From assembly GCA_002269645.1 (NCBI GenBank), contig NIVC01000412.1, forward strand, positions 558,001 to 622,000: a DNA stretch of 64,000 nt, written 5' to 3'. Under the pieces are notes generated by a model, which was not told the DNA's origin, made no database searches, and saw only the letters and a list, made by a program, of their open reading frames with translations. The stretch is from Macrostomum lignano (taxonomy: Eukaryota). Positions within the stretch are counted from its first letter, which is position 1. Every line of letters starts with the position of its first letter. The position numbers and the translations under genes are program-made. Below are positions 6,406 through 64,000 of this stretch, in pieces.

Positions 6406-6895
6406 TTACCCCCTCATCATTTTTTCCTCAAGCTTTCAAGCAGCTTTTACTATTCAGTTTTGCAGTATTTAACCTTTAATCCAGCAGTTTGGTTCACTTT
6501 TCTGTAGAAAGCCCAGAGAGTTCACTCTCGCCCGTGTCATTCAGCCCGGGTAATAACAGAGCACTTGAGCTTGAGCAGCCCCCGCTTCTAAAAGCGTGGG
6601 TGGAAAGTCTTCTGTTTGTAGTCTTCAAAACTTGCCACGCACCCTTCTCAGTTGTGCTCAGGAAGTTCTCTCCCTCGCGCTCTCTCTACTGCATAGCAAC
6701 AATCTTCTTGGCGGAACCGGCTTTCACTTATGCGGAAAAAATTGGGAATAAAATACAGGAGCAGACGAGGGTCAAGGTCTGCGGCCTGTTCGCGATTTCT
6801 CGCTATTGCTGCACTGCACTGTACGGTGTGCGTGCGAGTGGCTGCTGGCGATCGTGTCTTTACTCTCTGTCTGCTCTGTCTGCTCTGTCTGCTTG

Positions 6896-7436
<541 letters not shown>

Positions 7437-15700: not shown

Positions 15701-16135
15701 GATGAGTGCTTCCTGCGACAGACAGCGCAGCGTCAGGCCGCCGTGCTGCACCAGGCCTCAGTGATGTACGCAGCCGACGCGCCTGGCGCCGTTCTGGCGC
15801 CGCTGCCGATGCAACAGGCGGCGCCGGCGCAGTCACAGCCAACAAGCGCCGATCAGCTGCTGGTCTCCGGTCGCCAGCAGCAGCTGCCGCGGCGCAAGGG
15901 CTCCGGCGGCGGCGGTGGCGGTGGAGGCGGCGGCGGTAACAAAGGTTTCCACGAGCGTCGGGCCGACCTTCTCTCCTACACGGCCTCGGCGCCGAACTCC
16001 GCCGGAGGGAACGGCCTCGGCGGCGGCGGATTTCAAACTGAAGACGACGAGGACGAGAATCAAGTGTGCTCGGAGGGTGAGGAGCTGCCCAAGGGGGTGG
16101 CGATGCTGCCGGAACGGCCGGGTTCCGGGAGGTGA
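9708..16135 (+). CDS. C10orf67: C10orf67-like coiled-coil protein (DUF4709 + DUF4724), ~627 aa; exons 9708-10133, 10384-10533, 14263-14673, 14775-15146, 15611-16135
   Basis: All four introns are GT-AG, phase 0, and give one continuous frame. ISDQLKIG...DRATNTDSSEI and WEKKFAVLKRSLHAVKDECFLRQ match the recalled N- and C-terminal conserved blocks of C10orf67 homologues. The start could be the ATG at 9717. Confidence 0.8.
10625..11090. repeat. 40-bp minisatellite (tgtttaaactggcgccatttcatttaaataggctcctctt)n, in intron 2
   Basis: About 11 tandem units, each a dimer of 20-bp subunits. Confidence 0.92.
11420..12922 (-). CDS. intronless Src-family tyrosine kinase (SH3-SH2-kinase, 500 aa), nested antisense in intron 2 of the C10orf67-like gene
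   Basis: Uninterrupted ORF with gccATGG context. SH3 (ALHAY...WWYAR...GYVPSNY), SH2 (FVLRPCS), GHGSFSEV, VAVKTLK, HRDLRAAN, DFG, KFPAKW. Confidence 0.93.
   Translation of the reverse strand: MADQQNRKSNTSRKASLDSVRPKKPPRDDEYAQQPPPPTPPSLPVSEYPTARALHAYTAESADELDFKKDDVLDIISDLSKGWWYARRHRGNKLGYVPSNYVLLNNAEVTQQPGWMEITRSEADKLLLQPGLPEGLFVLRPCSVGCYSISLRVKHLTKPNFYSVQHYRMSITSAGLFCISPEVTFHSVGELLAHYAQTADGMACKLLKPYPQPPPPPPADLSQLEVNRDCFVLLEVIGHGSFSEVHQAKWNNSIFVAVKTLKPNMEAEQNFIQEARLLLKAHHPHVLQIMGVCTDREPLYIVTELMANGSLLNYLRKDKGVLLNIEHLLRMMMQLVEAMAHLESLRIVHRDLRAANVLVGDDARVKLADFGLARELDDAGLYTGQGEKFPAKWTPSEAVTKGRFTAKSDVWSFGVVMWEFVTYGGVPYQGLQNREAVELVSKGYRMPNPHGGHIRCDPSLYQIMLDCWSASPEKRPTFAKLKDQLKAYAPEKHRASRRRV
13540..14235. 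repeat. ~52-54-bp minisatellite (gagatgaggttgagaggctgggatccgagaagatgcttagaggatagaatct)n
   Basis: About 13 tandem units ending about 30 bp before the exon-3 acceptor. Confidence 0.92.
15188..15597. repeat. 8-bp microsatellite (aatgaccc/aatgacca)n filling intron 4
   Basis: Tandem array between the donor at 15147 and the acceptor at 15610. Confidence 0.95.
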
Positions 16136-25000: not shown

Positions 25001-26344
25001 TGTCAGAGAATGGGATGTCAGGGATTGGAATGTCAGAAGTTAGGCTGTCAAAGGTTGGGGTGTCAGGAGTTGTGGTGTCAGGGATTGGAGTGTCGAAAGT
25101 AAGCTGTCAGGGGTTGTTGTGTCAAAGATTTAAGTGTCAGGGGCCAGGGGTTGGGGTATCAAGTATTCAAGTGTCAGGGATTGGATTGTCAGAAGTTAGG
25201 GTGTCAGGGACAGGGGTTGGGGTGTAAAAGATTTCAGTGTCAGGGATTGGAGTGTCAGAAGTTAGGGTGTCAGGAGTTGGGCGTCAAGAATTGAAGTGTC
25301 AGGGGTTAGGGTGTCAGGGATTGGAGTGTCAGGGGTTAGGGTGTCAAGGATTGGAGTGTCATGGGTTAGGGTGTCAGGGATTGGAGTGTCAGGGGTTAGG
25401 ATGTCAGGGATTAGGGTGTCAGGGGTTAGGGTGTCAGGGATTAGAATGTCATGGGTTAGGGTGTCAGGGATTGGAGTGTCAGGGGTTAGGGTGTCAGGGA
25501 TTGGAGTGTCATGGGTTAGGGTGTCAGGGATTGGAGTGTCATGGGTTAGGGTGTCAGGGATTGGAGTGTCAGGGGTTAGGGTGTCAGGGATTGGAGTGTC
25601 AGCGGTTAGGGTGTCAGGGATTAAAGTGTCAGGGGTTAGGGTGTCAGGGATTGGAGTGTCAGGGGTTAGGGTGTCAGGGATTAAAGTGTCAGGGGTTAGG
25701 GTGTCAGGGATTGGAGTGTCAGGGGTTAGGGTGTCAGGGATTGGAGTGTCAGGGGTTAGGGTGTCAGGGATTGGAGTGTCAGGGGTTAGGGTATACCAAC
25801 CAGTGGCCAAAGCAAAACCAAGCGGCACTGCAGACCACACAAACCTGTCAGCATCTCTGCGGCTGATTTCGAACCAGGAGCTGAGCGAAGTCGGCTTGCC
25901 GTCGTCAATGAGCACATAGTTAGACGGTATGTAGCCGGCCTTGGAGCTGCGCTGGTGCCTGGCGTACCACCAGGGCTCGGAGGTGTCGCCTAAAACCTCC
26001 ATTAGGTCGTCTTTGCGAAAGTCCAGATCGTCAGGATTCTGGGCATTGTAGTTGTAAAGCGCCCTGACCAAGATGCGCTGCTGTGGCGGAGGCTGCGGCT
26101 CAACCATCGGCATTGGCTGGTTGGGCCGGCCGATGGGCTGCTGCGGATATGGCCCCATGAATTTGTTACCCGGCCTCTGCGGCTGCATGTGGCCTGGTAT
26201 CACATCAGCATGGCCCATGTGGTTGTTCCACTGTGCAACAGGCGCCAGTTGCTGCTGTTGCTGCTGCTGCTGCAGCTGCTGCGGATCTTCAATGTACCTC
26301 CGGCCGGGTTGCTCTGCCGCGTGCTTTGAAAAGCAGCAGCCCAT
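22043..26344 (-). CDS. Src-family tyrosine kinase (Src42A/Frk-like), 542 aa; exons 26344-25845, 24265-23757, 22662-22043
   Basis: MGCC N-terminus (myristoyl/palmitoyl), SH3, SH2, GNGSFGEV, HRDLRAAN, DFG, activation-loop Tyr (DDIYTA), tail TEIQY. GT-AG introns of phase 2 and 1 join in frame. Confidence 0.93.
22855..23525. repeat. 27-bp minisatellite (ttggtcattctaagaaatgagatcaac)n in Src intron 2
   Basis: About 25 tandem units. Confidence 0.95.
24920..25792. repeat. 15/30-bp G-rich minisatellite (ttagggtgtcagggattggagtgtcagggg)n in Src intron 1
   Basis: Homogeneous over about 25290-25792, degenerate to the left. Confidence 0.95.
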
Positions 26345-39533: not shown

Positions 39534-42500
39534 ATGGCTAAAAAATCATACGACCTTCTGTTCAAACTTCTGCTCATTGGGGACTCCGGTGTTGGCAAGA
39601 CTTGCATCCTGTTTCGATTTGTTGACAACACCTTCCAAACTTCATTTATATCTACTATTGGCATCGACTTTAAAATTAAAACCATTGAAGTTGAAGGCAA
39701 GAAGATTAAGCTACAGGTAACTATTGTAAATTAGTGATGCTTCTAGACCTGGAAGAGACCACAATCAAAGAAACTTTCATTTTGATAAAATAAATAAGCT
39801 TTCCTGCTCCCAGATCCTCAGTTGCTGGGCCAGCCTCCCAGATCCTCAGTTGCTGGGCCAGCCTCCCAGATCCTCAGTTGCTGGGCCAGCCTCCCAGATC
39901 CTCAGTTGCTGGGCCAGCCTCCCAGATCCTCAGTTGCTGGGCCAGCCTCCCAGATCCTCAGTTGCTGGGCCAGCCTCCCAGATCCTCAGTTGCTGGGGCC
40001 AGCCTCCCAGATCCTCAGTTGCTGGGCCAGCCTCCCAGATCCTCAGTTGCTGGGCCAGCCTCCCAGATCCTCAGTTGCTGGGGCCAGCCTCCCAGCTCCT
40101 CAGTTGCTGGGCCAGCCTCCCAGATCCTCAGTTGCTGGGGCCAGCCTCCCAGCTCCTCAGTTGCTGGGCCAGCCTCCCAGATCCTCAGTTGCTGGGCCAG
40201 CCTCCCAGATCCTCAGTTGCTGGGCCAGCCTCCCAGATCCTCAGTTGCTGGGCCAGCCTCCAAGATCCTCAGTTGCTGGGCCAGCCTCCCAGATCCTCAG
40301 TTGCTGGGCTGCCGTTATCCTCTTAGATTCAGGGCCATAATTGGTAGTCGTGTATAATGTATCTAACGGATAAAACTAATGTCGCCATGGTAACGAACTC
40401 CGGCAGATCTGGGACACGGCCGGGCAGGAACGGTTCCACACCATCACGACCTCCTATTACCGAGGCGCAATGGGCATAATGCTAGTTTACGACATCACCT
40501 CGCGCAAAACATTCGAAAGCGTGTCCAGATGGCTGCGCAATATTGACGAGCACGCCAGCGAAGATGTTGAACGAGTGATTATTGGAAACAAGAAGGATAT
40601 GGGTGATAAGCGGCAGGTAGGTGTTTATATATCCTGACAATCAATATATGGTCTGTGTACCATTTGCCCACAATCGATTTAATTATTAAAAAGTTATCCC
40701 GCCAACTTAGAACCAAATATTTTGTATTTTCCATACAGACAAATGTCATATTCCGGGCAAAGTTGGGCCATAGACACAAGCATCAACAGCGTGCACTACT
40801 AATAGTTGAACTATACGGATACCGGGATCGGGGTGGTGTTCAGGGGGTATTCTCACCCTTGGTAGTTTAACGGGCGAAAGTTTAGGGGTTCGATGCCCGG
40901 TCCCACTGGAACAATTTGAGTCCTTGAGCAAGACACTTTACTCTGCATTGCTTCAGTTCACCCAGCTGTAAAATGGGTGCCAGCATTAGCTGGGACAATT
41001 GAGGCTGTGTGGCGACCCCCCAGTCCTTGGACTGAACAGCCGTACGCAGCCTTCAGATGCGCCGCGCAATAGCTGCGGCTGAGCTGTCGGTTGCACATCT
41101 GGCCCAATTGGGGCAGGTGTAATCAATTATTACTAATAATATTACTGATTGTTTTGTTCTCTCTGTTCTCACATATGGGTTAGAGTGCTGGACAAGATCA
41201 CCATCACCAGCTTCACAGCGTTTTTGAGGCGCATCCTGAGAGTGAGATGGACCAGTCACACAGCAAATGAGGATGTTCTGCTAATTGCTGGTTGTAGAAG
41301 GAAGCTGATGGCAAACATTCGGAGATGACAGTTGGAGTTCTTTGGCCATACAGCGAGGAAACTTTCTGAAGGACCTGTCTTAATGAATAAGCCAGACTAC
41401 TCAAATAGGACTACATTTCTTAGAAAATGTTAGGGAGTAGGTTTTACCGAAAAAATACATTACGCAGATAGAAAGTTTTCATTATTTCAGCACAAAAATA
41501 GTTATTGCTTTTGATATGAGGCAGACACAATGTTAATCTTTTGATATGTCATGCCTTTCTTATAGCTCTAAGAGTCTAATTTATCATTCGTAGCTTAATG
41601 ACTGTAACAAAATGATTTTCTAATAGAGCTATCAGAAAAGCAAGGCATATCAAAAGATGAACATTATGTCTCACTTCTATCAAAAGCAATAAATATTCGG
41701 GCTGAAAAAAAGTTTCTCTATCTCCGTAATGTATTTTTAGGTAAAGCCTGTCTCCTTAAATTTTCCTAGAAAAATTGCTTCCCATCCTTCTACTCCCGTT
41801 GAATTTTTCACCCGGAATTTCGCCCGGAAATTTTTTGCGTTCACCCGGAATTTTTTCCTATTCCAGTAATGCAATTAGATCCGGGTGGAAATTCCGGATC
41901 TGTAACGAAAGTTTACAGAATCCGGGCGAAATTTCCGGATCAAAAAGAAAAATTCCGGAAAATAGACTTGGATCTCTAAAAAAATTCCGTTGACCGTTCC
42001 GGGTGAATTCCGGGCGAGTGAACCGGATCACACGAATCCGGGCGAGTGAACCGGATCAGCACACAATTCCGGGCGAATGAACCGGATCAACACACAATTC
42101 CGGGCGAATGAACCGGATCAGCACACAATTCCGGGCGAGTGAACCGGATCAGCACACAATTCCGGGCGAGTGAACCGGATCAGCACACAATTCCGGGTGA
42201 ATTCTGAATGATTGCATCGGATTTGCAGCCAAATCCTGTGCTTATCAATGTTGCGGAAAATTAAATGAAGAACGGGTAATTGGTCCATACATTTTCCACG
42301 ACTACGAATTGAATCGAATTCGATTTAGCCGTCCTCGAACAGAAATATTAAATCCAGTTGAACACAACTGTAAATCGTATATTTCTATGTACGTCTACGT
42401 ACTTTCCAAAACATAAAAATGTTTACCTTCTGAATGTCACTCAAATGAGCAACTGCACTTCGATTCCATATAACCGTAACCGTACCTTATCGCAACATTG

Positions 42501-45500
42501 GAAATTCTACAGGGATCCCAATCGACTACCTCTGAATGCATCTGTTGGGTGGGTCACTCGCCATACAGCTAATTAATTAACTTAAGTCAGCTGACTTGTC
42601 TATTCACTTGCTTAAGATCTCCGCAACAATTAAAAAGGGAGTATTATTTCTTTTTCCGGGACCCATCAAGGCTGATATATTTTGGCAGCCAGTGTCTCGA
42701 CAAGCGTTTCTAATGAAATCTAATCAAGCGAAATTGGCCATAACAAAAACGTAGAAATGAAATGCAAATAAATGCGGTGGTGGTGTTATGCACTCAATCT
42801 TGGACATCGCCCGCATTTCATTCCTCTAGTAGCTCGCCGTCTGGAGACATTTGCAGCTGATCCGGACTTCCCCCGATACCGGGAACCGGCTCCTGCGCAT
42901 GTTCACCAAGATGAGCTGCGTCTTGCTGATGCTGTCTTTTGCGCGACTTCCGGTTTCCGGAAGTCGGCCCCTCATTTGCAGCAGCACTGGTGATTCGTCG
43001 CGCCTTCACCTGGTCCGCCTTCTGTTGCCGCTCTGCGGCTGGCCGAGATTAAAAGAGGACCAATTCGCGGCAGCGACCGAAGGCTTTCCTCAATTCGTCG
43101 AAGCTTACTGGCACGTTCACGTGCTTACAGTACGCCTGGACAGTCTCCAGCTTAGCCGTGTTTGCTGCACGGACGTGTCCAGTCTCGCCATGCGAGCCGC
43201 GCCGACCGGACACGCTCGAGCTTTTAAAATCCTCAACGGAGAAGACGGCTCGCAGAATGGTCCGAACGAAGGTAGCTTTCACTCGCTCTACCATCTTCTT
43301 TGTATGCGGGTCCACGGCGTCCCGGTTTTTCTCGATGACTGAGGTGGCCTTTTCTCCGGCCGCCTCTGTGGCCAGACGGTCGCGCATGGTCACCAGCACG
43401 TTCTTGAAAGCGGGATCAGTGTCACAAATAGCGACTCCGGATCCGGCTTGCTGGTCGCTGGATGAGTGCACAGCCAAAACGGATTGCATGCTGCGGTGCA
43501 GTAGATTTCTTTGATTAGTGCTGATAGGCCCTTGTACGAAAAAAGCGGAAGATGCGCTTGGGCGTGATTCTGCAGTCTGTCCGTCGGTCTCATTGTCCGA
43601 ATTCAGACCGTTTTCAGACGAAGGGTGCATATCGGAGCCGCCCAGCATATTGCACACTTCATTAATTAGTGCAAGCGACTGCTCCTGTCGCTTTGCGACG
43701 CGACATAATACATGCACTGCCTGGCTTCTCGCCACGGTCGTGTCGGATTCCGACGAGTTCGTAGCAGAGATCGCTTCCAACCGAAGAACTTCAGCTTTCA
43801 GCTGACGATTTTCGGCTTGAGCCTCAGACAGCTTGTCGCGAACTCCGCTCAATTGATGGCCTATTAAGTGCATAAAAAGGAGGAGAGTGGCGAGGCAGCT
43901 GCTAAATAGAGAATCGACAACACTTATACATATACGAGACTGCTAATAATGTATTCTAGTATATGCACAAAGAACTTATGCAGTTCGTCCTCCGCTTCGC
44001 CTTGGGCCCGAATCTGTTCCATCATTGTTGTGCATGACGGACATCGTGACGGCTGCGGTTGTTGCGACGGCACACGCGCCAAAGCAGTCGCTTCAATCGC
44101 TTGGGACTTTCTTTCGAAAGGCCCCTTCCAGAGAGTGGCGGAATACCGGGATCCGGTACTCTTGTTAGCAGCCGTGACAACCAGGACACGGCACTTGCGG
44201 GTAGGCTCCTCATCCGCATGCGGAATCGCTACAATAGAGGCGTCCTGCACAACGCCGTACTGTACAGTGCCCTGAGAATCAGGGGCATATTGTACGCTCC
44301 AATAGCGATTGATAGCACCGGAGTACGCTTTAAACTCAGCAGGGAGTTCCTGCTGTTTCTTGGAAGTCTTGGAAGTCTTGCTTTTTGATGTCATATTGTC
44401 AGACGGACAGCCTATGGCTGAAATGGTTTCAGTGAAGGACACATTGTGTTAAAGACATGTGCTTGTTAAATTCCGATACAGCTGCCCAGATCTGCGGGAT
44501 CACTTAAGTAAATAACCTAGTAGCATGCGTCCTGTTAGGTAAGCGTTAGAAAATACAACATAAATGTGCAGACTATGTCACTCAGTCCTTAATTAGATAC
44601 TGTTTTGACGCCATCCTGCTATACTATACTACTTACAAAAGCAACCATCAAATGTGCCGCGGCACCGGGATTGGCCCTGCCTGGAAAATTGGGTTGTCTA
44701 TTTACGCCGAATCCGGGCACATGATCCGTGAGCCAAAGCCACACGCCGTCTGTGGCGATTCTCTGGCTATACCGATCTACAAGTTCACCAACGCTGTTAC
44801 ATCCGAGGTCGGCGAGAGGAATTTCAGCGCCTAATAGCCGTCGGTACGACGTCAATACAGACTTGATGCGCACCCGAGGTGCTGGACGGCCCCGATGTGC
44901 GGGGTACAGCAGGATGGCCCGGAGACTAGCTAGCACGTCGGCTATTTTCGGTTTCTTTTCATTGAACAGCACAGAGAATTCGTTGCGATCCATTGTGCTG
45001 AAAGGGGTGTGATATTCACTTCTGTAAATAGCAGTCAGTTTGAACTGTATGGGACGTAACCAGGGTATTAATGGCTACTTCGATGCTATCGAGGTATCAC
45101 TTCCTTACTGCACATATGTACATACTGATGCGGAAAATATATCATTCAATCAACTTCGGGTTCTAGCTGCACTTTTAGTGAATAGTTTTAAAATTTCTGC
45201 TGCACCTAATACTCAACAGTTTACGAGGTTACCTTGAATACATAACAATGATCACACATACTACCCAATAATTTCGAAAACGGAAATAAGAAAGACAGAA
45301 GTCAGTGCGCCAATACTGAAGCGCATAATTCATTTGTATTTTCAAATCGCATATCAGCTTAGCAGCTGCCTTGAGCCACAACAGAAGCGAGGATTGATTA
45401 TCCATCGCATGTCAGCTTAGCAGCTGCCTTGAGCAACAACAGAAGCGAGGATTGATTATCCATCGCATGTCAGCTTAGCAGCTGCCTTGAGCCACAACAG

Positions 45501-47872
45501 AAGCGAGGATCGATTATCCATCGCAGGTCAGCTTAGCAGCTGCCTTGAGCCACAACAGAAGCGAGGATTGATTATCCATCGAATGTCAGCTTAGCAGCTG
45601 TCTTGAGCCACACGATATGGTTACCGACCCTAGTAGGCCGTATAGACTACGCTAGACTTGATCTGCTCACGACTGGTGCAACTGCAAACGCATTAGACAA
45701 ACCACTGGAGCATGTACCGAAATAAATCGGATTAGCGTCTATCTTAATAGTGAAGCTGCTTTGCATACTGGGCCAGTTAAAGTTATTTGGAACTATGCCA
45801 CAGTCTCCGTCTAGACACCCAGCTGTGCCAAACCATACGGTTGGCTGACTCATGCTTCTAAGCGTCAAATATGACGATAGAATCATTCAGCCCGTTGACA
45901 CACTAAGCAGCTGTGATAGACTACATGCCAGTGGAAGTCAAACCTCTCGCACACAAACAGGGCGCAACAATTTTTCAATTGTCACCTGTACGGAGGATGG
46001 GCTCAGCCTCACATTACGGACGCTACAGTGCCGCCGTAAAGCAGATAAGTTGTCTCATCAAAGCGAGGCTTGATTACCCCTCGCTTTCCAAGAGGAATTA
46101 GCGCCGCTGACCAAACGGATGCCAGGGATTGCCTGATGGGAAAACCATTTGCTGGGGTCTGTATTCAGCGGTTTTCCATCAGAGGCTTCCTCTCAAAATC
46201 CCCATGGTACTTGTAATGGATGCCTGATTGATTCCGACTGAAGTCTCGAAATTCTCCCGATTCAGCTTCGCCCGGAACTCGGCTGCAATTCGGGTCAAGG
46301 GAGCTGATCCCGGTGAATTTTCCGGATCATTTGGTCCGGATCACTAGGGAATTCCGACTCAAATCCCGAAATCTCACCCGGAACACTACTGAAATTCGGG
46401 TCTACACCCAGAATTCCGTAGTGTTCCGGGTGAAAAATTCCGGAAAATCCAACCGGAACAGCTTTCCTTTTCCCGAAATTTCCGGATCTTTACCGGATCA
46501 TATACCGGATCTTATTTCCGGATCTTTTTCCGGAAAAAGGGGCTGTTCCGGGCCAAAAAAGCTGATCTGGGCCTTCACCCGGAAATCAATTAAAAATCGG
46601 GCCCGGATCACGAAATTCCGGAAAAAATTCCGGGTGAAAAGTTCAACGGGCTTTGAGTAGTCTTTGGGGAGACCATGAGCAGCATGGAAATACTTCACGC
46701 CTCAATGGACCGGTGCTAGAGGGAGAGGAGGGCAACTCCAATCTCAGGCCCTGACACGGTAGAAAGGACTGAAAAAAAGTCAGTTAAGTTGAATTGCCGA
46801 TATTTCGAAATTATTATATTTCTTCGTCAGGGCAAGAGAGAGAGAGAGAGAGAGAGAGAAGAGAGGTCACGGTGTGTAAAAAAATTGAATATGGGCTACC
46901 GGTTTTGAGCCTCTGGGCTCTTCGTCAGGCCAAAAATAAAGAGAGAGAAGAGAGGTCACGGCGTGTTAATTTTTTTTTAATATTAGACTACCGGTTTCAA
47001 GCCTCTATGCTCTGTCTGATAGAATTGATGAGTAGATGTACATTTTAAACCCTTTTCAGTCTAACTCTAACTTGTTCCAGAGGCATTTCAACCAGTCAGT
47101 TTGGGCGACAGTATATTTAGTGCATTAAATTTTTTTTTGGAAATACGATTAAATTAAATGCAGGTATTGAAGGTGGGAGTCTAAAAATCGATATTTGTGC
47201 GTTCAATCAAGAAGTTTGAATAAAATAAACGACAATGTAAATAAATTGTAGTTCTATAGGTAAAGTGAGCGCATTGGTTAAAATGATTCAGTGGTTTCCT
47301 GGCTGAGACTTGAACTTATTGGGCGCCAGGAGGCTCTGTAAATGTCGTTGCCGTGTAAATGCGGGCAGTATGCGGGAGCCTGGTTTATTTTGTAGCTTCT
47401 CAAAGTTTTTAGCAATCTCGTTGGCAAGCCAGACCGTAGATGGGTGAAAAGGAAGGACCAGGACCGGTGGGATGGGTCAGAGACGAAGATGGTTGTGCAC
47501 CCTGATGTTCGTACCCGGCGGTTTGTCAGTCCACAATTTTTTAATCCAGAGAGAGAGAGAGAGAGATTGCACTGTCAACACTTGTCGGGTAGAAATGTAT
47601 TAATGAAGCGACAAGCCTAACCAGGCTAAACTCAACCCCGCCTTCAGGTCAGCCAAGAGGAAGGCGACCGTCTGGCCCGCGAGATGAGCATCCCGTTCTT
47701 CGAGACGTCGGCTAAAACCGGCGACGGCGTTGAGGCGGCTTTCCGCGCCCAGACGGAGCTAATCCTGCGCAAGACGCCCGCCGCCATGGCTGGCGACGGT
47801 GGCGGCGCCGGTGGCGGCACCGTCAGGCCGCACGAGGGCGGCGGTGGCCATCGGGCTGGCAGGTGCTGTTAA
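39534..47872 (+). CDS. RAB10: Rab10-like small GTPase, 205 aa; exons 39534-39716, 40407-40616, 47648-47872
   Basis: [65 protein letters not shown]-terminal CC. Both introns are GT-AG, phase 0. Rab8/10/13 clade; Rab10 by the N-terminus and FHTITT. Confidence 0.9.
39806..40308. repeat. 28-bp minisatellite (cctcccagatcctcagttgctgggccag)n in Rab intron 1
   Basis: About 18 tandem units with occasional 29-bp variants. Confidence 0.96.
40821..41140 (+). mobile_element. tRNA-derived SINE with CORE-like central domain
   Basis: Box A-like tggtgttcagggg, box B ggttcgatgcc (40887), then ccttgagcaagacact...ctgtaaaatggg resembling the MIR/CORE domain, and an AT-rich tail. Second copy at 212-362. Confidence 0.75.
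41190..41390 (+). mobile_element. RTE-clade LINE ORF2 C-terminal fragment
   Basis: Translates [20 protein letters not shown]...IRR*QLEFFGH, the recalled RTE C-terminal motif, with an in-frame stop. Confidence 0.75.
41409..41787. mobile_element. fold-back MITE (~150-bp imperfect inverted arms, ~55-bp loop)
   Basis: The left arm ...ttattgcttttgatat...cttatagctct is mirrored by agagctatcag...atcaaaagcaataa.... Confidence 0.75.
43049..44394 (-). CDS. coiled-coil + BEN-domain protein, probably two exons (ORFs 44394-~43975 and ~43900-43049)
   Basis: C-terminal [25 protein letters not shown]...[11 protein letters not shown] fits the BEN consensus; heptad [18 protein letters not shown]; beta-rich N-terminal module. 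The exact splice junction is unresolved. Confidence 0.7.
44637..44993 (-). CDS. small stand-alone LOTUS (OST-HTH) domain protein; exon 1 of 119 codons, probable short exon 2 (DACY*) near 44530
   Basis: [10 protein letters not shown]...H.G...V...[23 protein letters not shown] matches the LOTUS pattern LRAxL...YRxxxGxxIPxxxLG. GTAAGT donor at 44636; downstream ctaac branch-point-like motif and aacag acceptor. Confidence 0.75.
45352..45612. repeat. 58-bp tandem repeat (~4.5 units) inside the TIR element, upstream of the LOTUS gene
   Basis: agcagctgcc-type core recurs at 45361, 45419, 45477, 45535 and 45593. Confidence 0.93.
46815..47013 (-). ncRNA. tandem degenerate Penelope-type (type I, minimal) hammerhead ribozyme motifs
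   Basis: Minus strand of 46893-46931: ggc-CUGACGA-agagcc cag aggcuc-(A)AAA-ccgGUA-gcc. The second copy (46986-47013) keeps GAAA but loses CUGA. A third CUGACGA lies near 46825. Unit about 89 bp. Confidence 0.6.
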
Positions 47873-51766: not shown

Positions 51767-53153
51767 TCCCCCAATGACCTGATCGATTGAGGTCAAGGTC
51801 ATTTCACAGAAGGAAAAGTAACACAATGTAGAAAAAACAAATATTGCCGCCGCTAAAACATCGGACTGCAGAAAAAAGGCAAAAACCGAAAAAGCACGAA
51901 AATCAACCAACTGTGAATAAACTGCAAAATTACCAGAAAAAACGCAAACCAATCACCGATAAAAGAGAAAACCACAAACTACATAAACAAGAACTAACCG
52001 GCTCGAAGAAAAAAACTTAACTTAAAGCGACTGTAAGAACAAACACCACCAACTACAAAAAACAACAAACGTGTCGCAACCAAAACCAACCACCAAACAA
52101 CAACGACCGTGAACCACCAACCAACCGACTGAACGACCACCGACCGTCACACAGCCACAGACATCGAACGACAACCGACCGAACGCCACCAACCAACTGA
52201 CTGACCGACCACTAACGACACAGACTTCCAGAGGTACCAGCAACTTCACTTGCCGTCGAAGATGCGTAGCAGCTCGACCACTTTGAGAACTGGCCACCCG
52301 CAGTAGGCATGAGCGGGCGACTCCATCGCGACCCTGGTGCACAGCTTCGACAACCGCAAGCTTCCCTTGAAGTCTTGGTAATCCGGCATCCATCACTAAC
52401 TCTACGTCACCAGCTCGTATTTCCCGATTCGATGTTCGACCGTCTTTAGATGATCGCTCACGGAGGGCCAGAATGTACTGTGCTTGCCACTCCTTCCAGA
52501 ACTTGTTCAGCAAATGTCTGGACTTTCGGAGCCTTTCGGGAAGCGGCAAGGACCATTGAAACTTCGCTTCGTCCTCTGGTTCTTTTGTCAGGCGGCGCAG
52601 AACGAGGAAATGAACAGGTGTGATGACTTCTGATTGCTCACCGGAAGACACAAAGCCAAGCGGTCTAGAGTTTACAACCGCTTCCGCCTCACAGATTACT
52701 GTCGACAGCTCCTCGACGGTCAGGAAAGCCCTTCTGATTGTCTTCTTGAGCACTGATTTCACTACGCCGACCAGCCTCCTTGTCCAGCTGGGAGTAATTG
52801 TGCTGGGCCGAGGTCAGCCAGCGAGACGGCGGCCCATCTGCTGATCTGCCCCGCCCTGACATCACACCGCTGCCGCCTCTGGGGGCCAAGCCCGGAGCCC
52901 GCGGCAGTTTTCGAGAACTGCGTCGCGGTGTTGAACTTCCTGGGGAAGGCGGGCGCCATCTGACGCCCGGTGCCATGGGTCCTGGCCCGAGCACGCCCGA
53001 AGAAGAAGAAGAAGAAGGTCAGCCAGCGACTTCAATCGCATGGTCCTGCCCTATCAGGATCAGGTGGAGTATGCTGACGCGTTGTGCTCCGTTCGAAGAG
53101 GCACGTCCGGGTTGAAGTGCATCGGGCGCCGGAATCCAGCAGCAGCTGACTTA

Positions 53154-54427
53154 TTTGGTGAGCCAAAAGTTTCCGGAATTTGAACATTTTAAAACTATAA
53201 CAAATAGTGTCAAGAACAAACAGTTTACAGCGATGTGATGTAGTTGCCATTCAAGGCCCTGACCCTCTCCCATCTTGCTGGCAATGCCTCAATCCCCTCC
53301 CTCCAGAAGCTCGCAGGCTTTGAATCAATCCATTTCTGCACTGCCTGCTCCACATGTTGCTTGTTGGCGAACCGCTGTCCATCACAAAAGCTCTGGAGAG
53401 ACCTGAACACATGGTAGTCGCATGGCGAGAGGTCTGGCGAGTATGGTGGGTGGGGCAAGACACTGAAGCCCAGGCTTGCCAGCTTGGCCTGGGTGAGTCT
53501 TGCTTTGTGAGGCCGCGCATTGTCGAAGAGGAGCACCTTGTCGCGGTGTCCCGGGCACACGGATCGCAGCAAACGGGCGACCTGCTCCAGTTCGCTGCAG
53601 ATCACCTCCGCGTTCACAGCCATGCCATGCGGGATGACCTCCCAGAAAACAGGGCCAGACGAGCAGAACCAGAAAGATAGCAGCTCCTTGCCGCAGTGGG
53701 GGTTCCGCATTGGGCAGCTGGGTGGTTCTTCAGAAGCATCGACCCAGACGGCTGATGTGCTTGGGTTCTCATAGCAGACCCACTTCTCGTCTTGAGCGAT
53801 TATCGACTTGAGAAAGTTTGGCGATCCGGCCTGGCGAAGATTCGAAGTTGCCACATCCACCCTGGCTCTCAGCTGCTGAGGTGTCAGCTCATGGGGCACA
53901 AAGTTGGCTTCTTCGGCACCTTGTCCGCAGCATGTAGGCTCCGCCGGACCGTGCCATAGGACACCCCAGTAGCAACTGACAGCTTGCGCACGCTGTAGTC
54001 CGGATTGTCCTCAAGGGCTTGGAGAACGGCATCGCCATCAGCAGCAGGGGGTCGGCCTGACCTCGGCTTGTCTTTCAGCTCATAGTTCTCCTCTGCAAAG
54101 CGAGAGAACCAGTCGTACACCGACGACTTGGAGGGTGCATGTGGGCCCATCAGCTGCAACAACTCGCGATGTGCCTCTGCTGCGTTGCGTCCCGCATGAA
54201 AGTGGTTGAGCAGAATTGCTCGCCATTCAGTTCTTGGCAGTTCCATTGGATGCGTTTGCTGGCTTAAGTAGGCAGGGTCTGAGAAACTGAGCAATATTAA
54301 GCTAAAGAGTGATGATAAGGCTGGCCAACAGCATAGTAGATGGTTGCTGCTTTTAAGCTTTTCCATAGACAAAAATTAACTAAAAGTTCGATTCTAAAAA
54401 ATTCCGGAAACTTTTGGCTCACCCTAA
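53154..54427 (-). mobile_element. full-length mariner (D,D34D) element, 1274 bp
   Basis: ~29-bp TIRs (ggtgagccaaaagtttccggaattt) with TA on both flanks. Confidence 0.93.
53225..54246 (-). pseudogene. mariner transposase with a single frameshift near 53900
   Basis: ATG at 54246 (MELPRTEW), HTH, RSGRP, frame change at the (W/F)VPHEL motif, then DEKW, DNARPH and YSPDLSPCDY. Confidence 0.9.
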
Positions 54428-55542: not shown

Positions 55543-58500
55543 ATGGCTTCTGAAAGTGGGTTGACAGCTTGTGTTAGTATTGGTAAGTTATGTAACAATA
55601 TTTATTAAATTTGTGCCTATTAAATATTTGTTTAAATAAATGAGTAGTGTTGCAAAAGTAGGCAAATTTTCAAAAAATGTAAGCTATCTGAACAAATATG
55701 CTTAAGTACTTAGTCTTAAGCTTCTAGATTGTTAAAGTTTTTAACTAGATATTACATAATTAAGCACTTTATTACATTTAATTTTGCTTACTTATTATAA
55801 ATACTAAATCAATAAAGCAACAAAAAGTGTTGATAGGACTATTTTAAGAACAAAATTACAGCATTATCTATAGACATCCAAAAATATTCAGTATACTGAA
55901 ATAAGTTGCTTAGCAAGTATGATTTCTTTTTAAAAAGACATCAATATTTATCTATCATATTTCAAATACATTTTTTCAGTTCCCTACAAGCTGAAGGAAG
56001 AAATCAAGTATCAACTAAATGATAAAGAGTTTTCAAAATTGTGTCAAAAAATTGATGCCAAGAAAGATGATTTGCAGCTGTTACTTCAAAATCAAAGTAA
56101 TGGCAACTTCAACTTGGTGACAGTGACTCAAAAACAAGTTTCTGATAGTTCCAACACTGACAGTGACTCATCAGATGATGAAGATTGTCTCAAAGGCTTT
56201 CCTGAAATTGAATTGAAAATATCAATTGTGGATTTCTCTTCTGACCATTTACAACATTTTAAGGATTTTGTTTGTCAACAAACTGGTGGTTTAATTGAAT
56301 TGATAACAAAAAGTGTAAAAGTTCAAAATGACATTGCCTTCAGCATTTTGTTTGAAGAAGAATATTACAAGTCCCTGTTGAAGAATGCTAAGAAGCTGCA
56401 GTAAGTGTTTTTCTTGCATTTAATCCAATTGCTCATCAATTTTTTATGTTGCATTTTATTTAGTTTTTGTATTGCTAAATGCACTTTTTAATATGGCTTA
56501 AAAAGTTGAGTTTTCAGTTATAACTTACCATTTTCAAAATTCATTTGCCTTTAATAAGTGCATGGACTACCAAAATGGCGACAAAGTCACTTGCTGGCGC
56601 TACTAATAATTACACCAGTAGAACTGTCAAAAGCACAGCTGCTACTGACACTTGTGCCGATACAACTGCAGCGAAGTCAGCTGCTACTACTGACAATTTT
56701 GACGACACGATTTCTGCAAAGTCAGCTGCAACTGACACTGATGCCGATACAACTGCAGCAAAGTCAGCTGCAACTGACACTGATGCCGATACAACTGCGG
56801 CGAAGTCAGCTGCTACTACTGACAATTTTGACGACACGATTTCTGCAAAGTCAGCTGCAACTGACACTGATGCCGATACAACTGCAGCAAAGTCAGCTGC
56901 AACTGACACTGATGCCGATACAACTGCGGCGAAGTCAGCTGCAACTGACACTGATGCCGATACAACTGCAGCGAAGTCAGCTGCAACTGACACTGATGCC
57001 GATACAACTGCAGCGAAGTCAGCTGCAACTGACACTGATGCCGATACAACTGCAGCGAAGTCAGCTGCAACTGACACTGATGCCGATACAACTGCAGCGA
57101 AGTCAGCTGCAACTGACACTGATGCCGATACAACTGCAGCGAAGTCAGCTGCAACTGACACTGATGCCGATACAACTGCAGCGAAGTCAGCTGCAACTGA
57201 CACTGATGCCGATACAACTGCAGCAAAGACTGCTTTCGGTAGACACACTGAAATGGATGCATCAGTATTACCAGAGGTGAGTTGAAGTTAAGAGAAGTTC
57301 TAGAAGTTGAGTTGAAGTTCTAGATTTTTTATTTTTGTACCCTTTGAATTCATTAACTTCTAACTCTGGTTCTAAGCCTTTTTGTAACCTCTTCCATAAA
57401 TTTCTTCCCAAGTGCCAAGACACTCTAAAGCTTGAACTCTAATTCGCCTAGAATTAAAGCGTAACTTCACTTTCTGCAAGCTATGTTATCAAGTTTTTCA
57501 CGTTTTCTATGAATTATTTCTTATAAATATTAACAAGCCTTTGTATTTCCTTGGCGGGTTGTCTTGGTAGCTATATAACTTTACTGCCCAAGCGTAATAC
57601 GGGAGTACGACGTTTGCTTGCGGGAAGTTTGCTTGCAGGAATTTTGCTTGCGGAAATTTGCTTGCCGAAGTCTGCTTGCTGAACTTTGCTTGCCGAACTT
57701 TGCTTGCCGAACTTTGCTTGCCGAACTTTTTGCTTGCTGAACTTTGCTTGCCGAACTTTGCTTGCGAAACTTTGCCTGCCGAACTTTGCCTGCCGAACTT
57801 TGCTTGCCGAACTTTGCTTGCCGAACTTTGCTAGCGGAATTTTGCTTGCCGAACTTTGCTTGCCGAAATTTGCTTGCCGAAGTTTGCTTGCCGAACTTTG
57901 TTAGCGGAATTTTGCTTGCCGAGGTTTGCCAGCCAAAGTTTTCTTGCGGAACCTTAAAAATCTATTTTTGAGCTCTTGTATTTCTAATTTTTATTTTCTA
58001 AGATTCGTGGAAGTCGCCTATAGTGTTATTATTTTGTATGAGGATATGGCGTATTTGAAAAGCCCTAACGCAGAAATGGAATAATTTAGTTTTTACTGGG
58101 AATATGTTTTCAACAAAAAAATGGACACAATTTTGAACAATACACATATCGAATGATTTAGGCACCGAAATGTACATAATAATTTTTTTGCAATTGACTG
58201 TACCACCGATCTGTGAATTGCTACATATCATGACTCGTTAGGATACCCTAATACCTTAATACCCTAATTATCAGTTCGACGCTGATAAGAATCCACTTGC
58301 AAAGCATCTGTAGTAAGTAATAATTGACTGACCAACTTCTCAAGCAATCAAAACAAGCAAGCAAACAAGAAAATAATTCGGCAAGTTAAAACCTCTTAAT
58401 TGTGATTGCGAATTTCTAGGAAGCAGACATCAAAATTCCACAAGCAAAGTTCGGCAAGCAAAATTCCTGTAAGCAAAATTTCTGCAAGCAAAGTTCGGCA

Positions 58501-61500
58501 AGCAAAGTTCGGCAAGCAAAGTTCGGCAAGCAAAAGTCCCGCAAGCAAACTTCTCGCAAGCAAATTTCATAGACCCGCGTAATACATTGAATATTCTTTC
58601 TTTAAATTGCAAAATGCTTTATTATTCACTAAGTCTGGTCCGAGCGATTTAGTAGCAGTGAACTAAAGTTTCCCGCCAAGGCTGCTTTACTTCACTTACT
58701 CGTACACTTCACTTACTTCACTTCACTTCACTTCACTTCACTTTTACTTTACTTACTTCACTTACACTTTCACTTTTCTCTAACAAAACTGCCCTCATTT
58801 AATAGATCACTAGCATCACGCATTCAGTAGATCTTCTCTCTCTACAAACACTCAGCTTGGCTCAATGATATGATAACATAACTTCTATGATAACAACATC
58901 CAGTGGCCAGGCGTGGCGGAGTCGGGAGTGAGGGGGCATTGCCTTCCCAAAGTTTCAATGGCATCAATAATTACGAGTATATTATAGCATTTAGTTGTTA
59001 TTATCCATTTAGTCTTCTCTATCCAAAAAGCATCAGCTTGTGCTTGCGTTGCCCCCTTCTTGTGAAGGACAATTTGTCTTCTGCTATGCTGACCAGTGGC
59101 TCATACAATTAGGTTCTAAGCACTGTTAACTTTCTAGTCTGACAGGAATCTTCAAGAAAAATTGATCGTGGTTAATTAGTATTGGCCTTTTTAGTTATAA
59201 ATAATCTAATTCTGTTGCTGGTTACTGGGCAGGCAACTGCATGGTCCTTTCAATAACTGAGATTGTGTCATTTTCAGAGCTTTACTTCACTTACACATTT
59301 ACAAGTACATGCAGCATATTTTGTTGTTAGCTCATATTGCCAGCTAACTTTAGCAGGAAATAGCCGTTATGAGAACATTTAGTGTGAAAGAACTGCGCAT
59401 ATTGACAGCTTTGTTTGATTTCACAGTTGGAACCTTTACAAAGAAACCCTGTATAATCTCAATTTTCTCTGGGTGCAAAAAATTAAATAGCTAGCTACAT
59501 ACATATGTATTACATACTTAAAAGTTACATTCCATTTTAACATTTCAGTTCCTCCCAGCAGTTTTTTTTAGTAAATCAGAGCTCCAAAACTTGACAGTAG
59601 AAGACCAAAAGAAATACGTAAGTATCGCCGCAAAGTCTTCAAAACTCGTGTAAGTTCAGTTTTCTTTAAAAATTAAAGTAAATACCACAAAACTTTTTAG
59701 GTTCAGTACGAGTTTCGGCTTTGTCTGCCTGATCTATTCAGCTATTTAGAAAAGTATCAGTTTCGTAATATTTATCGCAATTCAAGCCTTCGTAAAAAAG
59801 TGGCAGAACTAGCAATGTGTCATATATTAAAGAACATGCATGGTTTCACTGTTTCTCTGGTGCTCAGTAACGAGAAGTTAAACAGATTGTACCAAGAAAT
59901 CCCGAATAAAGTGGACGGCTCCAACTACTACTGCTTGCCCGCATGGCAAGTTTATATTCGATCAGATGCAGCTGAGCATATTTCATATCAGTTTAATATT
60001 AGTGAGTGCGGTGAGATGATCGATCTATTTCATTGTGAAGAGTATCGAAAATTGACAAATCAATTTGGCTTTTTTGAAAGCCTAAAGCAGGTCAGCATCA
60101 AAAGCCTTTTAACTGAAGGACTAAATGATATAGTCAAGGAAAAGCTATTGCGAAAAATCCGCGAAACAAAGTGTCGCAAACTTCACAAAGACTGCTTTCT
60201 TCAGTTTGCTATCTTTGGTCGCTATGAGACCTTGAAAAGGCTGCCTGATGCCCGCTCCTTAACAGCTCTAATGTTTAGTTTCTGTTATGAGTGTTTTGAA
60301 AATACTGAAATCGTCGATTCTATTCCATCGATTTATATTCATTTCATCACCAAGTTTTTGAAGCCATTGCTGGAAAAAGCCGATTTCTCAGTGCAGAAAC
60401 AATTTTCTAATGATTTTATCGCTTGTGTCAGTTTCTTCATTCTAAACCCACAAATAACACAATTTTATCCGTTTTCTGCTGATGGAAAGGCTCTTGCTGG
60501 TATTTTATTTGTCCGGATTATGTCAATCATACGGCAGCCTGACGCTGATATACAGTTGGAACGAAAAGTTGCAGATTTGTTTCTTAATTTTATTAATGAT
60601 CCTATAATTCCGGAACTTGACGATGATTTCCTTAAGTGCTTGGATCATGCTGGTTGCATTGACACGATTTTTGCAATTTATCGAAAAGCTTCATCTAGGA
60701 CTGGTAAATGCAATACGTCGTTCCTTAAGCTTCTTGATAAGCTGAGGTGTCCAAAAAGATTAGACTTAAGATTTATTCCAGTGGTTACTGACTGTCTTAT
60801 GAGAAGCAAGAACCATGCTAATGACGAAATGATGATTGAGTTTTGCTACATTGCTCACAAAAACGGTTTCGATTTGAACGACTGTGAAGCGTCATTGGCT
60901 TTGTATATTGCGTCGAACGACAAAGAAAGCTGCAGTCGAAAAGCAAAAGAGTTTTTGAACAGCGCCGAAAGCACACAAGGATTAGATCCTAGTGTGTTGT
61001 CGTTCATCAAGAAAGTTCTAAGAGAACGGGCAATATCTGGCGCACTCGAAAGCCTGAAATGCGATAAAGGACTAACTGTGCCAGAAATTCTTAAATCAGC
61101 CAGAATAATATTACCAGCCGATAATTCTGAAGACGCTAATGCTGATAAAATTGAGACAATTAGAGCCGCTTTCTTAAAGTCTCTAGAGAACTATCCTGCG
61201 GAGGATGAACTTTGCAGTGCTGCAGCATTTGCTGAGCTTCTCAGAATTACCTGTCTAGAACAAAAAGATGCTTTTGCGTGGCAACTGGTGAAGAAAATTC
61301 TCGAGAAAAAATCTCGCTTTCGATCCGAGTTTGTGAGAAAATTCAACACATTGCCCATCAATACTCATCTAAAAGAGACTTCGGGGCAAATGAAGGGCCA
61401 ATCGCATGAAATTTTGTCTACATACCTTCTTGCTTGCGAAGAAGAAAGCAACAAATTGCCACAAGAAGCTATTGAAGACTTGTTACTGGATTGTTCGGAA

Positions 61501-64000
61501 TCTAAACACAAAGATTTCAAAGACGCCTGTCTAGTTGCGTATGAAAATGTGCTACGAAACCAACGGTTGTGTGGAAACGTATTAGAATCAGCTTTTTCAA
61601 CGTCTAATCCAGAACTTTTAAATGCCGCAGTTAAAATATGTGCTGAGTGTCTTCGGCACAGCTGCAGTGAACGCAGCGAGATCGTAGTAGAATACTTTCT
61701 GCAAAAAGATGTCCTAAAGTCGAAGAATCATCAGCCAAATAGGTAAGTTTTGTTTTGATGCAGCTGAAAACAGAAAAAATATTATCATACATAGGGTACT
61801 CGTAGCTATAGTCAGTTTTTATTTCCATAATCGATGCTGATCGAAAAATAACCAAGAACGACTTAATTATAATCGCTTTATTGTAGTATCGTACTATTGC
61901 TTTGCAGGGGTTGTTTTAGTATATTAATGTGATGTTTTCATATTTTGCATAAATTTAGTTTATAAAATAATAAATATTGAATAAATGGTTAAAAGATAGC
62001 CGTCTACATGCCACGTTTTGATAAAGGCAAAATTCAAGGTTCAGCCTTCGAAAAAATTGCCATCATTTATGAGTGCAGAGTCCTTAAGTAGTCGTTGAAA
62101 ATAACTTAACGCCCAGCTTGAAGCAGTAGGCCTGGAGTAACTATATTTTACTTCAGTAGCTAGTTTTTTAAACTACGAGTATCTCGTAGCTGAAACATTC
62201 CATCTATTTATTAACTGAGCTCTGCCATGAAAATGAAATATAACCAAATTCAAAAATGTTTTTAGCACCAAAATTTGAAAATATGCAGCCCAGAGATGTT
62301 AGTGGTAAAAGGTAAAATTTGCATTTTTTCATTTTTCTGTTTTAGAGATACTGTGAGCCTCATGGTGGAATTATTGCGCGCTTCTTTAAAGAATGCCTGG
62401 GAAGTCGAACAGCAAATTCAGGTTCTGCGTCAACATTGCCATATCTGGCAGTGGGTTGAATCAGCTGCAAATGAAGAATTGTCCTCGGAATTTGGAAAAG
62501 AAGCAGTAAATTGCCTTGGAAGCTTATCCGCCTACTTTCAAATGTTTACCAGCTTCAATCTCACAGCCAATGACTTCAATGCTTTCGTCACTGTCTATAT
62601 GAGTGATGAAAATGAAGAGCGCCAAACATGCGAGGCAATAGATTCTATTGCAAATTTGCTACTGCATAATCAAGTTGGAAGAGTAAATTTCCAAGAAGTT
62701 GTCAAAGAAGGGAAGTCTGCTATCGATACTTGGCTGCATCAACAGATGGCAATGAAAAAAATTATAGCTTTCTTTACTGAAGTTAAGACGTCATATGGCG
62801 TCAATTTAACTGATCTTAAGGAGGTCGAAAGGGACTTTACCGAGTTTATGAGACATAGCGAAAATATCAAAATCTGTGAAATGCTTCACACTTCCGTCTT
62901 AAAGAGATTCGGAATCGACGTAAATATGCTGGGCGTCAATTTAGACCCGAATACTGCTCTTCAGTCATCTGTTTTCAACTATTTCTTTCGGAAAGTCGCT
63001 ACAGAGCAAAGCTCTCTTAGCAGCTCTGGTATAACTTGCTCACAATTTTGGCACGATGTTTTTCCAGTAGCTTTTGATCAATACACCAAATTTGTATCAA
63101 AGAGTCTTGTGGCTGAAGAGGTCAGCCTAAAGGATATTGAGGATATTTCACAAAGTTTGGAAGGAAATTTTAACCTTTCGAATGAGTTTCAACTGCTCGA
63201 GAAAATTTTGTTAAATAGCCGAGGCATTGAAAACTTTTACAAAGTGCTGTCGAGGAATGAGTGGAAAAGTAGACTTAGTGCACTTTTGTGGCTTCATGAA
63301 ACTTTATCTGTGTGTCCTGAGAAAGAAAAGCAAAGCATCTCGGACAGCTCAAACAGCTCAAGTCAAAATTTCAGTGAAGATTCACGTGTGCTGGAACTAT
63401 TACATGAGTACCTAAATCTGCCTAGCGGCATCACATTGTCAACGTTCTTGCAGTTGCACAATGACTTGTCCAATGAATTTAATTCGGTCACTGAGAACGC
63501 TTGGTGCGTTATTGAACGCGTTTTCAACTGTAGAGACGGAATTGTAAAATTTATTCGGGAGCAGGCAGGTTCTGACTTCCAGCACTTAATGGACTGTGAA
63601 ATTGCTGGTCAAGATGTGAGCATTTCAACTATCAACTCATTATTTCTGCTACAACGTGCAATGAAGCCGCTTTTCTCAAGTTCGCAGCCTTTAATACATG
63701 AGATATTTAAATGTATCAATCGCTCAATCAGCTCTATTGGATGTCATATTCAGTCCCGTGACGCATCAGAGGATACGGCTACGAAAAATTTGTTAGAAAG
63801 GTTGAATGAATGTGAGAAAAACCTAAATGCGATTCGAGAACTTCACTCTAGCGTTGGGTCGCATGGAGAGACTTCAAAAAAATTTGCACTTGAATTTGTT
63901 AGCCTAAAATCGGACCAGTCGGACCAGGTTACTGTCACCATAAAGATTATTGAAACAGCTATTGACAGTTTGAATTCATCTGCATTGAGTGACGAGAAAG
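55543..64000 (+). CDS. very large multi-exon protein running off the window (possibly RNF213-like); exons 55543-55582, 55980-56400, 56559-57276, small exon(s) including 59549-59617, 59701-61742, 62346->64000
   Basis: GT-AG junctions with matching phases (1, 2, 0, 0, 2). The last exon is open to 64000. Sequence is helical and Leu/Cys-rich. The RNF213-like impression comes only from KFIREQ..DFQHLMD...TINSLF; no ATPase or RING domain is in the window. Exons at 57.3-59.5 kb are uncertain. Confidence 0.7.
56630..57225 (+). repeat. 42-bp coding minisatellite (ATDTDADTTAAKSA)n
   Basis: About 14 in-frame units inside the exon 56559-57276. Confidence 0.9.
57598..58578. mobile_element. non-autonomous TIR element with asymmetric 15-bp subterminal arrays (ttgcttgccgaact)
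   Basis: The array at about 57610-57950 is inverted at about 58435-58565, and the termini are imperfectly inverted. Confidence 0.75.
58700..58778. repeat. (cactt)n microsatellite
   Basis: Degenerate pentamer run. Confidence 0.8.

Follow-up and report, generated by a model that had tools for sequence, protein, structure and literature searches.

A likely non-autonomous copy of a CMC-like transposon family, with a predicted BEN-fold accessory gene, in a Rab10 intron of Macrostomum lignano

Described systems, the element and its relatives

The En/Spm (CACTA) elements of plants possess a transposase, TnpD, and an accessory protein, TnpA, which binds the subterminal repeats. Mirage elements make 2-bp duplications. 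The criteria for the transposases of the CMC (CACTA/Mirage/Chapaev) group, including a DDE triad with a C(2)C motif after the second D, have been described, together with target site duplications of 2-5 bp and termini that read 5'-CA...TG-3' "in most cases" (PMC12730594). Chapaev elements have duplications of 3-4 bp and invariable CAC...GTG termini (PMC4079192). The present study concerns a 4856-bp element at 41795-46650 of a 64,000-nt stretch of Macrostomum lignano DNA (contig NIVC01000412.1, assembly GCA_002269645.1). The whole stretch is called the window, and a window position equals the record position minus 558000. The element most likely represents a non-autonomous copy of a two-gene, CMC-like transposon family; this copy has lost its transposase, has kept its accessory gene and is probably decaying.

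Compared with En/Spm, the element was similar in its short terminal inverted repeats and its subterminal repeat arrays of several hundred bp. It differed in its termini (CCC...GGG instead of CACTA), in a 2-bp flank match instead of a 3-bp duplication, and in its host, which is an animal and not a plant. Mirage and Chapaev, the animal branches of the CMC group, were set beside the family by their descriptions. They resemble it in a DDE transposase whose second D is followed by C(2)C, as seen in the relative L002, and in its apparent short duplications, whereas the CAC...GTG termini of Chapaev differ from the CCC...GGG of this family.

The terminal inverted repeats were found at 41795-41832 (+ strand, on the 3' side of the genes) and 46613-46650 (- strand, the end upstream of the genes), with arms of 38 nt each that were 87% complementary. 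The first arm begins CCCGTTGAA and aligns with the termini of two related loci, L002 and L005; the second was located by an inverted-repeat search and a count of the terminus. The outermost 23 nt (CCCGTTGAA.TTTTCACCCGGAA) occurred twice in the 64 kb, at the two element ends, and did not occur in shuffled sequences. CCGG-rich subterminal arrays covered 41795-42205 on the left and 46230-46650 on the right, upstream of the genes. Within the terminal 436 bp, CCGG occurred 22 times at the left end and 18 times at the right end, whereas the window as a whole had a mean of 1.2 per 500 bp. The spacing from one CCGG to its neighbour peaked at 13 bp in the left array and at 12-13 bp in the right array. 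The left array contained a tandem repeat (31-bp unit, 6.3 copies, 42006-42197, Tandem Repeats Finder). By direct reading, CT stood on both flanks (41793-41794 and 46651-46652, with junctions ...TCTACT/CCCG and CGGG/CTTTGA), which may be a 2-bp target site duplication. The inverted termini starting with CCC, the CCGG arrays of about 400 bp and the CT flanks had already been pointed out in a sequence-only reading of this DNA, and all three were confirmed. An Rfam search of 41000-47500 found no RNA family.

Three long open reading frames (ORFs), A, B and C, were present in the element, all on the - strand. ORFs B and C are the two exons of one gene, termed gene 2. Its junction was taken from P0001 (A0A1I8I0I8), a UniProt model of M. 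lignano which is 93% identical and shows the spliced form ...GEAEDEL-C-HQLSGVR.... Another tandem repeat (58 bp, 4.6 copies, 45346-45612) was non-coding and lay between ORF A and the far end.

A HMMER scan with the C-terminal 155 residues of gene 2 retrieved five proteins. The M. lignano "Tensin 2" model P0002 (A0A1I8JF29) holds a degenerate gene 2 copy with 76% identity, and in P0001 a gene 2 piece is fused to a cathepsin ("Pept_C1") model. Judged by their sequences, both are probably chimeric predictions. Because these copies sit in unrelated gene models, the family is multi-copy and dispersed in M. lignano. The proteins P0003-P0006 (219-268 aa, from marine metagenomes) possess the same coiled coil and C-terminal domain, with an invariant R-C-R-E motif. 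Close database homologues of the element proteins were found in M. lignano only. P0006 is encoded on L003, a 2.4-kb contig (JBCAZM010000456.1, GCA_038533115.1) that was binned as a Pseudomonadota metagenome-assembled genome (MAG) and has a eukaryote-style two-exon layout; L003 is probably of eukaryotic origin and was assigned to the bacterial MAG by a binning error.

The closest relative found was L002, a Tara Oceans contig of 10198 bp (ERZ976238 k127_1411745), with an element of about 9.9 kb at 97-10043. Its inverted termini, at 97-129 and 10011-10043, begin CCCGCTGAA compared with CCCGTTGAA in the window, and eight of the terminal nine bases were identical. CCGG-rich arrays lay inside both ends of L002, with a spacing peak of 12-13 bp as in the window. 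A 242-aa ORF near its right end was similar to exon 1 of the window gene (36% identity, E 6e-23), followed by an exon-2 homologue in the same orientation. The codon and the phase of the gene 2 intron were common to the window, L002 and L005. Moreover, in L005 a similar terminus with TCGTCCGG repeats followed about 740 bp after the gene 2 homologue. Unlike the window copy, L002 possesses an 863-aa transposase, has no ORF A and shows no duplication at its flanks (AT against CC); protein identity between the two was 29-36% only.

On this comparison of sequences, 41795-46650 is a single transposon, and its termini, arrays and gene 2 occur as one unit in different organisms. Two independent repeats resembling miniature inverted-repeat transposable elements (MITEs), flanking host genes without forming a single mobile unit, would agree with a flank identity of just 2 bp and with the CCGGATC motifs, whose orientation at the two ends is the same (direct). 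However, the 23-nt terminus occurs at two places only in the window, M. lignano models of unrelated genes contain degenerate copies, and L002 and L005 carry termini, arrays and gene 2 together. The explanation by two MITEs, which the sequence-only reading had named as a refuting case, was rejected because the three features co-occur in different organisms, and it is extremely unlikely. For the same reason, gene 2 is best regarded as the element's own gene and not as cargo. The cargo pairing of a LOTUS with a BEN gene, as first proposed for this DNA, was revised: gene 2 is a conserved gene of the family, and L002 has no LOTUS ORF.

Several searches were negative. Exact-sequence look-ups of ORF A, ORF C, the 156-aa exon-1 ORF and P0001 returned no record. 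The homology search with ORF B was empty although P0001 shares about 65 residues with it, so negatives obtained with that search tool are weak. Scans of metagenomes and viral contigs for gene 2 found nothing. Gene 2 was found in none of 80 metagenome loci whose transposases are more distantly related, and a scan of these loci for terminal inverted repeats was uninformative.

Gene 2 and its predicted BEN fold

Gene 2 lies on the - strand, with exon 1 at 43980-44394, a phase 1 intron at 43861-43979 and exon 2 at 43049-43860. The predicted product has about 408 aa. Exon 1 encodes a basic N-terminus, a conserved domain without an assigned fold and a CPSC (CxxC) motif; exon 2 encodes a coiled coil, a disordered linker, a helical C-terminal domain with a predicted BEN fold (the last 125 residues, 43052-43426) and the stop codon. 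The coiled coil corresponds to long helices predicted at 43640-43870 (helices 2-38 and 42-78 in an AlphaFold2 (AF2) model of ORF C). The exon 1 domain had no Pfam match and no meaningful match in a profile search of PDB sequences.

The intron edges in the window read CTGC/ATAAGT...TTAATAG/GC, so that the 5' splice site (43979-43978) is AT. At the homologous codon, L002 and L005 have the donor C/GTAAGT, whereas the window has C/ATAAGT, a change of G to A at 43979. Among alternative GT-AG pairs, the frame was restored by weak donors only. A full-length gene 2 protein from the window copy is therefore doubtful, because the conserved donor reads AT instead of GT. The same mutation suggests that splicing fails and that the window copy is probably in decay. 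Two intact-looking genes on the same strand, antisense to the host, had been described from the letters alone. The strand and the antisense orientation held, whereas the second gene proved to consist of two exons with a conserved donor that reads AT. At the other end of the gene, the TAA at 43049-43051 is followed by 69 in-frame codons (42818-43048, - strand) whose translation is a basic tail resembling that which the relatives carry after RCRET. Since these codons follow in frame and P0002 reads across the site, the TAA may be premature or lie inside a short intron.

The C-terminal domain was modelled with AF2 from a six-sequence alignment of its last 125 residues, which gave a predicted local distance difference test score (pLDDT) of 84.7 and a predicted template modelling score (pTM) of 0.79. 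When this domain model was compared with the PDB by Foldseek, 11 of the 12 top matches were BEN domains bound to DNA, and the BEN matches included Insv, BEND6, Bsg25A, BANP and NACC1. The best was Insv (4ix7), with an E of 0.023, a probability of 1.0 and a root-mean-square deviation of 2.9 over 80 columns. In addition, bracovirus BEN proteins ranked first in a viral structure library. A model of the whole of ORF C had a pLDDT of 57 and a Foldseek list dominated by long helices, with BEN at rank 48, and was replaced by the domain-only model.

Two results speak against the assignment. Pfam recognises BEN in no family member; the BEN profile (PF10523) gave no match when ORF C was searched with an E limit of 1 and P0002-P0006 with a limit of 0.1. 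Furthermore, the Foldseek E-values were modest (0.02-0.6), though the probabilities were 0.95-1.0. A profile search of PDB sequences with the C-terminal domain also gave no BEN chain and no meaningful match. On the strength of the model, we accept that the C-terminal domain of gene 2 has a predicted BEN fold, while its sequence has no match to the BEN family profile. The BEN gene first proposed thus agrees with the structural matches to BEN domains and not with the Pfam profile. Compared with cellular and viral BEN proteins (Insv, BEND6, BANP, NACC1; bracovirus), the likeness was in fold (TM 0.45-0.64, probability 0.95-1.0), while the identity to the gene 2 domain was just 12-19%. Unlike the known BEN proteins, the gene 2 family has its own invariant R-C-R-E motif.

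Transposase, superfamily and proposed mechanism

In a tblastn search of the window with the L002 transposase, no transposase and no remnant of one was found in the window element, in agreement with the earlier statement that the element has none. Since the transposase is absent, the window copy would move only with a transposase supplied in trans, as do the transposase-less deletion derivatives of En/Spm.

The L002 transposase (P0009, ORF 3923-6514, 863 aa) is a DDE protein encoded upstream of gene 2. P0009 itself had no Pfam match. Its homologues were P0010 from the ant Monomorium pharaonis (LOC105834125, E 7e-8) and P0011 (E 1e-4). P0011 matched DUF4218 (27.5 bits against a cut-off of 27) and Transposase_21/tnp2 (E 5e-4), and P0010 matched DUF4218 with an E of 0.004. 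The three proteins shared the invariant motifs DG, DAPARA and CDKC (C-x2-C) and a downstream E. The catalytic positions of L002, namely D286, D372, C391-x2-C394 and E558, were invariant with P0010 and P0011, and an H-x3-H just ahead of E558 was present in L002 only among the three. The motifs shared by the three are in line with the published description of CMC transposases (PMC12730594).

An element with the P0010 transposase was found in the ant as three copies of about 11.6 kb, which were 99.96% identical (L087 2619-14230, L088 2616-14230, L089 2620-14231); the copy number is thus at least three. It has the termini CCCAGT...TATGGG and subterminal repeats of the AAGACATCTT type. From its sequence, the ant element appears to be a very young transposon that may still be active. 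A 2-bp match of the flanks was observed in three of five insertions (CT/CT in the window, TA/TA and AT/AT in the ant), and not in ant TG/AT or L002 AT/CC, with a chance of 1/16 for each. By these comparisons, CCC...GGG termini with an apparent 2-bp duplication recur in the clade. The ant element also has a second gene, of 411 aa with a faint DUF4806 match, and one of its copies lies inside a fatty-acid-synthase gene model.

Several points weigh against a CMC-like family with a conserved accessory gene. The termini of the window, L002 and ant elements are all CCC...GGG, in contrast to the CA...TG of most CMC elements. The identity of two flanking bases in the window is expected by chance in 1/16 of cases, and in L002 the two flanks differ (AT and CC). 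The link to the CMC group passes through two homology steps and the element of another organism. A similarity of the second ant gene to gene 2 was tried and found unsupported: a BLASTP alignment of 24 residues had an E of 0.01, and hhalign gave a probability of 0.45%. Binding of the arrays by the gene 2 protein is a pure analogy, based on TnpA and on the fact that BEN domains are known to bind DNA.

The CCC...GGG termini do not exclude CMC membership, because CA...TG holds only "in most cases" (PMC12730594). The flanks of L002 may be chimeric, as the contig is a metagenome assembly of a repeat. Sequence homology indirectly supports a place of the family within, or next to, the CMC group. This group had been guessed from the window alone; the connection of the L002 transposase to DUF4218 and tnp2 via P0011 is in favour of that guess, and the termini, which are not CA...TG, are against it.

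Compared with En/Spm, the full-length relative L002 matches the two-protein system, and its transposase is tied to tnp2 and DUF4218 via P0011. However, the proteins of En/Spm arise by alternative splicing of one transcript, whereas those of L002 are encoded by separate genes, and TnpA is unrelated to the gene 2 protein with its predicted BEN fold. This full-length relative consists, in order, of a terminus, CCGG arrays, a DDE transposase, the two-exon accessory gene, CCGG arrays and a terminus. By analogy with TnpA of En/Spm, the gene 2 protein would dimerise through its coiled coil. It may bind paired CCGG half-sites, 12-13 bp apart, in the ATCCGGGCGAAATTTCCGGATCA-type units of the subterminal arrays, and would bring together or mark the two ends for the transposase, which, supplied in trans, would cut at the CCC...GGG termini. 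Such a binding role is suggested because gene 2 and the CCGG arrays are conserved together, the fold is that of BEN domains, and the half-sites are 12-13 bp apart. By this analogy we infer that a TnpA-like accessory factor is a simpler reading of gene 2 than cargo.

The gene 2 protein may instead be a regulator, for example one that represses transposition or transcription, or one that resembles insulator proteins. The BEN structures matched by the model (Insv, BEND6, BANP, NACC1, Bsg25A) are those of sequence-specific DNA-binding repressors or insulator factors, which favours this explanation. Its conservation beside the transposase and the arrays fits a co-factor and a regulator alike, and the data agree just as well with a repressor. 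We regard a regulator in place of a co-factor as an unlikely case.

ORF A, the host gene and the meaning of the family

ORF A (124 aa, 44619-44993, - strand) is LOTUS/OST-HTH-like. Its sole Pfam match was OST-HTH (PF12872), with an E of 0.001 and 19.3 bits against a cut-off of 23.8; residues 15-80 (window 44754-44951) were aligned with profile positions 7-60 of 71. The LOTUS domain of Oskar (5cd7) was the second-best PDB sequence match, with an E of 1.8 over the same residues. These matches hint, weakly, at a LOTUS identity. The LOTUS gene first read from the letters is thus in line with the OST-HTH match, whereas the score is under the cut-off and L002 has no counterpart. A homologue of ORF A was found neither in L002 or the short contigs nor in the 80 metagenome loci with transposase relatives. 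As a piece of the transposase, ORF A was rejected; similarity to the L002 transposase was not found.

ORF A, seen here only, may have been captured as a fragment, or it may be the first exon that an internal deletion left of a longer gene. The latter, with ORF A as the first coding exon of a longer gene (a transposase or another) whose downstream exons were lost, is supported by a consensus donor TTT/GTAAGT five codons ahead of the stop (44636-44631) and by a position upstream of gene 2, which is that of the transposase in L002. When this donor is joined to the next acceptor (44420-44418), a stop follows immediately, as is expected of a broken gene. However, neither the transposase nor any other part of L002 resembles ORF A, and the OST-HTH match occurs in neither P0010 nor P0011. 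This origin is accordingly given a low probability.

A tttcag acceptor stands just upstream of the ATG in both ORF A and gene 2. In M. lignano, 39% of transcripts are trans-spliced and about 7% are polycistronic (PMC5730564). Because of these acceptors and the trans-splicing and polycistrons of the organism, a single transcription unit of ORF A and gene 2 is plausible from the sequence. This co-expression would suit a functional mobile cassette, in which a LOTUS protein engaging Vasa or nuage is combined with a BEN chromatin binder for piRNA evasion or for germline or neoblast targeting, and so would the open frame of ORF A with its OST-HTH and Oskar matches. Nevertheless, ORF A has no counterpart in L002 or the 80 related loci, the LOTUS score is under the Pfam cut-off, the conserved gene 2 donor is broken in the window copy, and the BEN-fold gene is more simply the accessory gene of the family. 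The cassette is thus quite unlikely, and its anti-silencing or germline-targeting function, as suggested in the sequence-only reading, has the weak LOTUS match as its sole support. Less probable still is a related proposal, in which the transposon lineage acquired a LOTUS protein which, co-expressed by spliced-leader trans-splicing with the BEN-fold end-binder, reaches the Vasa/PIWI granules of neoblasts and germ cells. If that were true, the acquisition would blunt piRNA silencing or confine transposition to heritable cells.

The host gene is a Rab gene on the + strand with three exons, at 39534-39716, 40407-40616 and 47648-47872. The spliced product has 205 aa, and among solved structures human Rab-10 was closest, scoring 290 bits, while Rab-8A scored 255. 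The element occupies part of intron 2 of this Rab10 gene, with its ORFs antisense to the host, and the intronic placement given in the sequence-only reading was therefore correct. Nested inverted repeats forming a MITE-like hairpin lie at 41416-41773 and end 21 bp from the left terminus of the element; 57-nt arms (41416-41472 and 41717-41773) enclose 74-nt arms (41497-41570 and 41624-41697) that are 85% complementary. Directly right of the element, 46831-47013 contains a stretch of (AG)n and a direct repeat of about 90 bp in two copies.

Other features were observed elsewhere in the window. A mariner/Mos1-type transposase at 53225-54372 (- strand) extends across two overlapping ORFs (Transposase_1 1.8e-13, HTH_48 1.2e-11) and is probably a frameshifted mariner copy. 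A 246-aa ORF at 52022-52762 (- strand) matched DUF5641 (3.5e-14), a domain that typically occurs in the C-terminal region of polyproteins of BEL/Pao-type retroelements; the ORF is likely the remnant of a retroelement. Two Src-family-like SH3-SH2-tyrosine-kinase genes were present on the - strand, one at 11420-12922 as a single 500-aa ORF with Pfam domains, and one at 22043-26344 with several exons and a minisatellite within an intron or exon region. The 648-aa ORF at 59800-61746 (+ strand) had no Pfam match. Long minisatellite arrays were found at 982-2022, 3847-5079, 5755-7498, 15044-15751, 23002-23548, 24865-25919, 39822-40357 (within Rab10 intron 1) and 56545-57285, and they produce spurious long ORFs in several frames. 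These arrays agree with a published account of M. lignano as rich in tandem repeats (PMC5730564), in which the assembly also has 180 Mb of duplicated blocks.

In a literature search, no paper that connects CMC transposons with BEN or LOTUS domains was found, nor was any report of a BEN-fold accessory gene in Mirage or Chapaev families. The combination of CCC...GGG termini, CCGG half-site arrays and a BEN-fold accessory protein was likewise not found reported. The LOTUS aspect, if true, would bear on the conflict between transposons and piRNAs in an animal with PIWI-using stem cells, for which Macpiwi1-bound piRNAs have been described (PMC4604429), and it rests on one sub-threshold match in one copy. 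For the annotation of M. lignano, a repeat family can be recognised that is at present merged with host genes in predicted models, such as "Pept_C1" and "Tensin 2" in UniProt. The family would represent a lineage of CMC-like transposons in animals, marked by termini that read CCC...GGG, arrays of CCGG half-sites and a conserved accessory protein of predicted BEN fold, which would be useful for the classification of transposable elements. It offers a testable case of a BEN-type DNA binder that may serve a transposon, and it may therefore bear on the origin of the cellular and viral BEN proteins.

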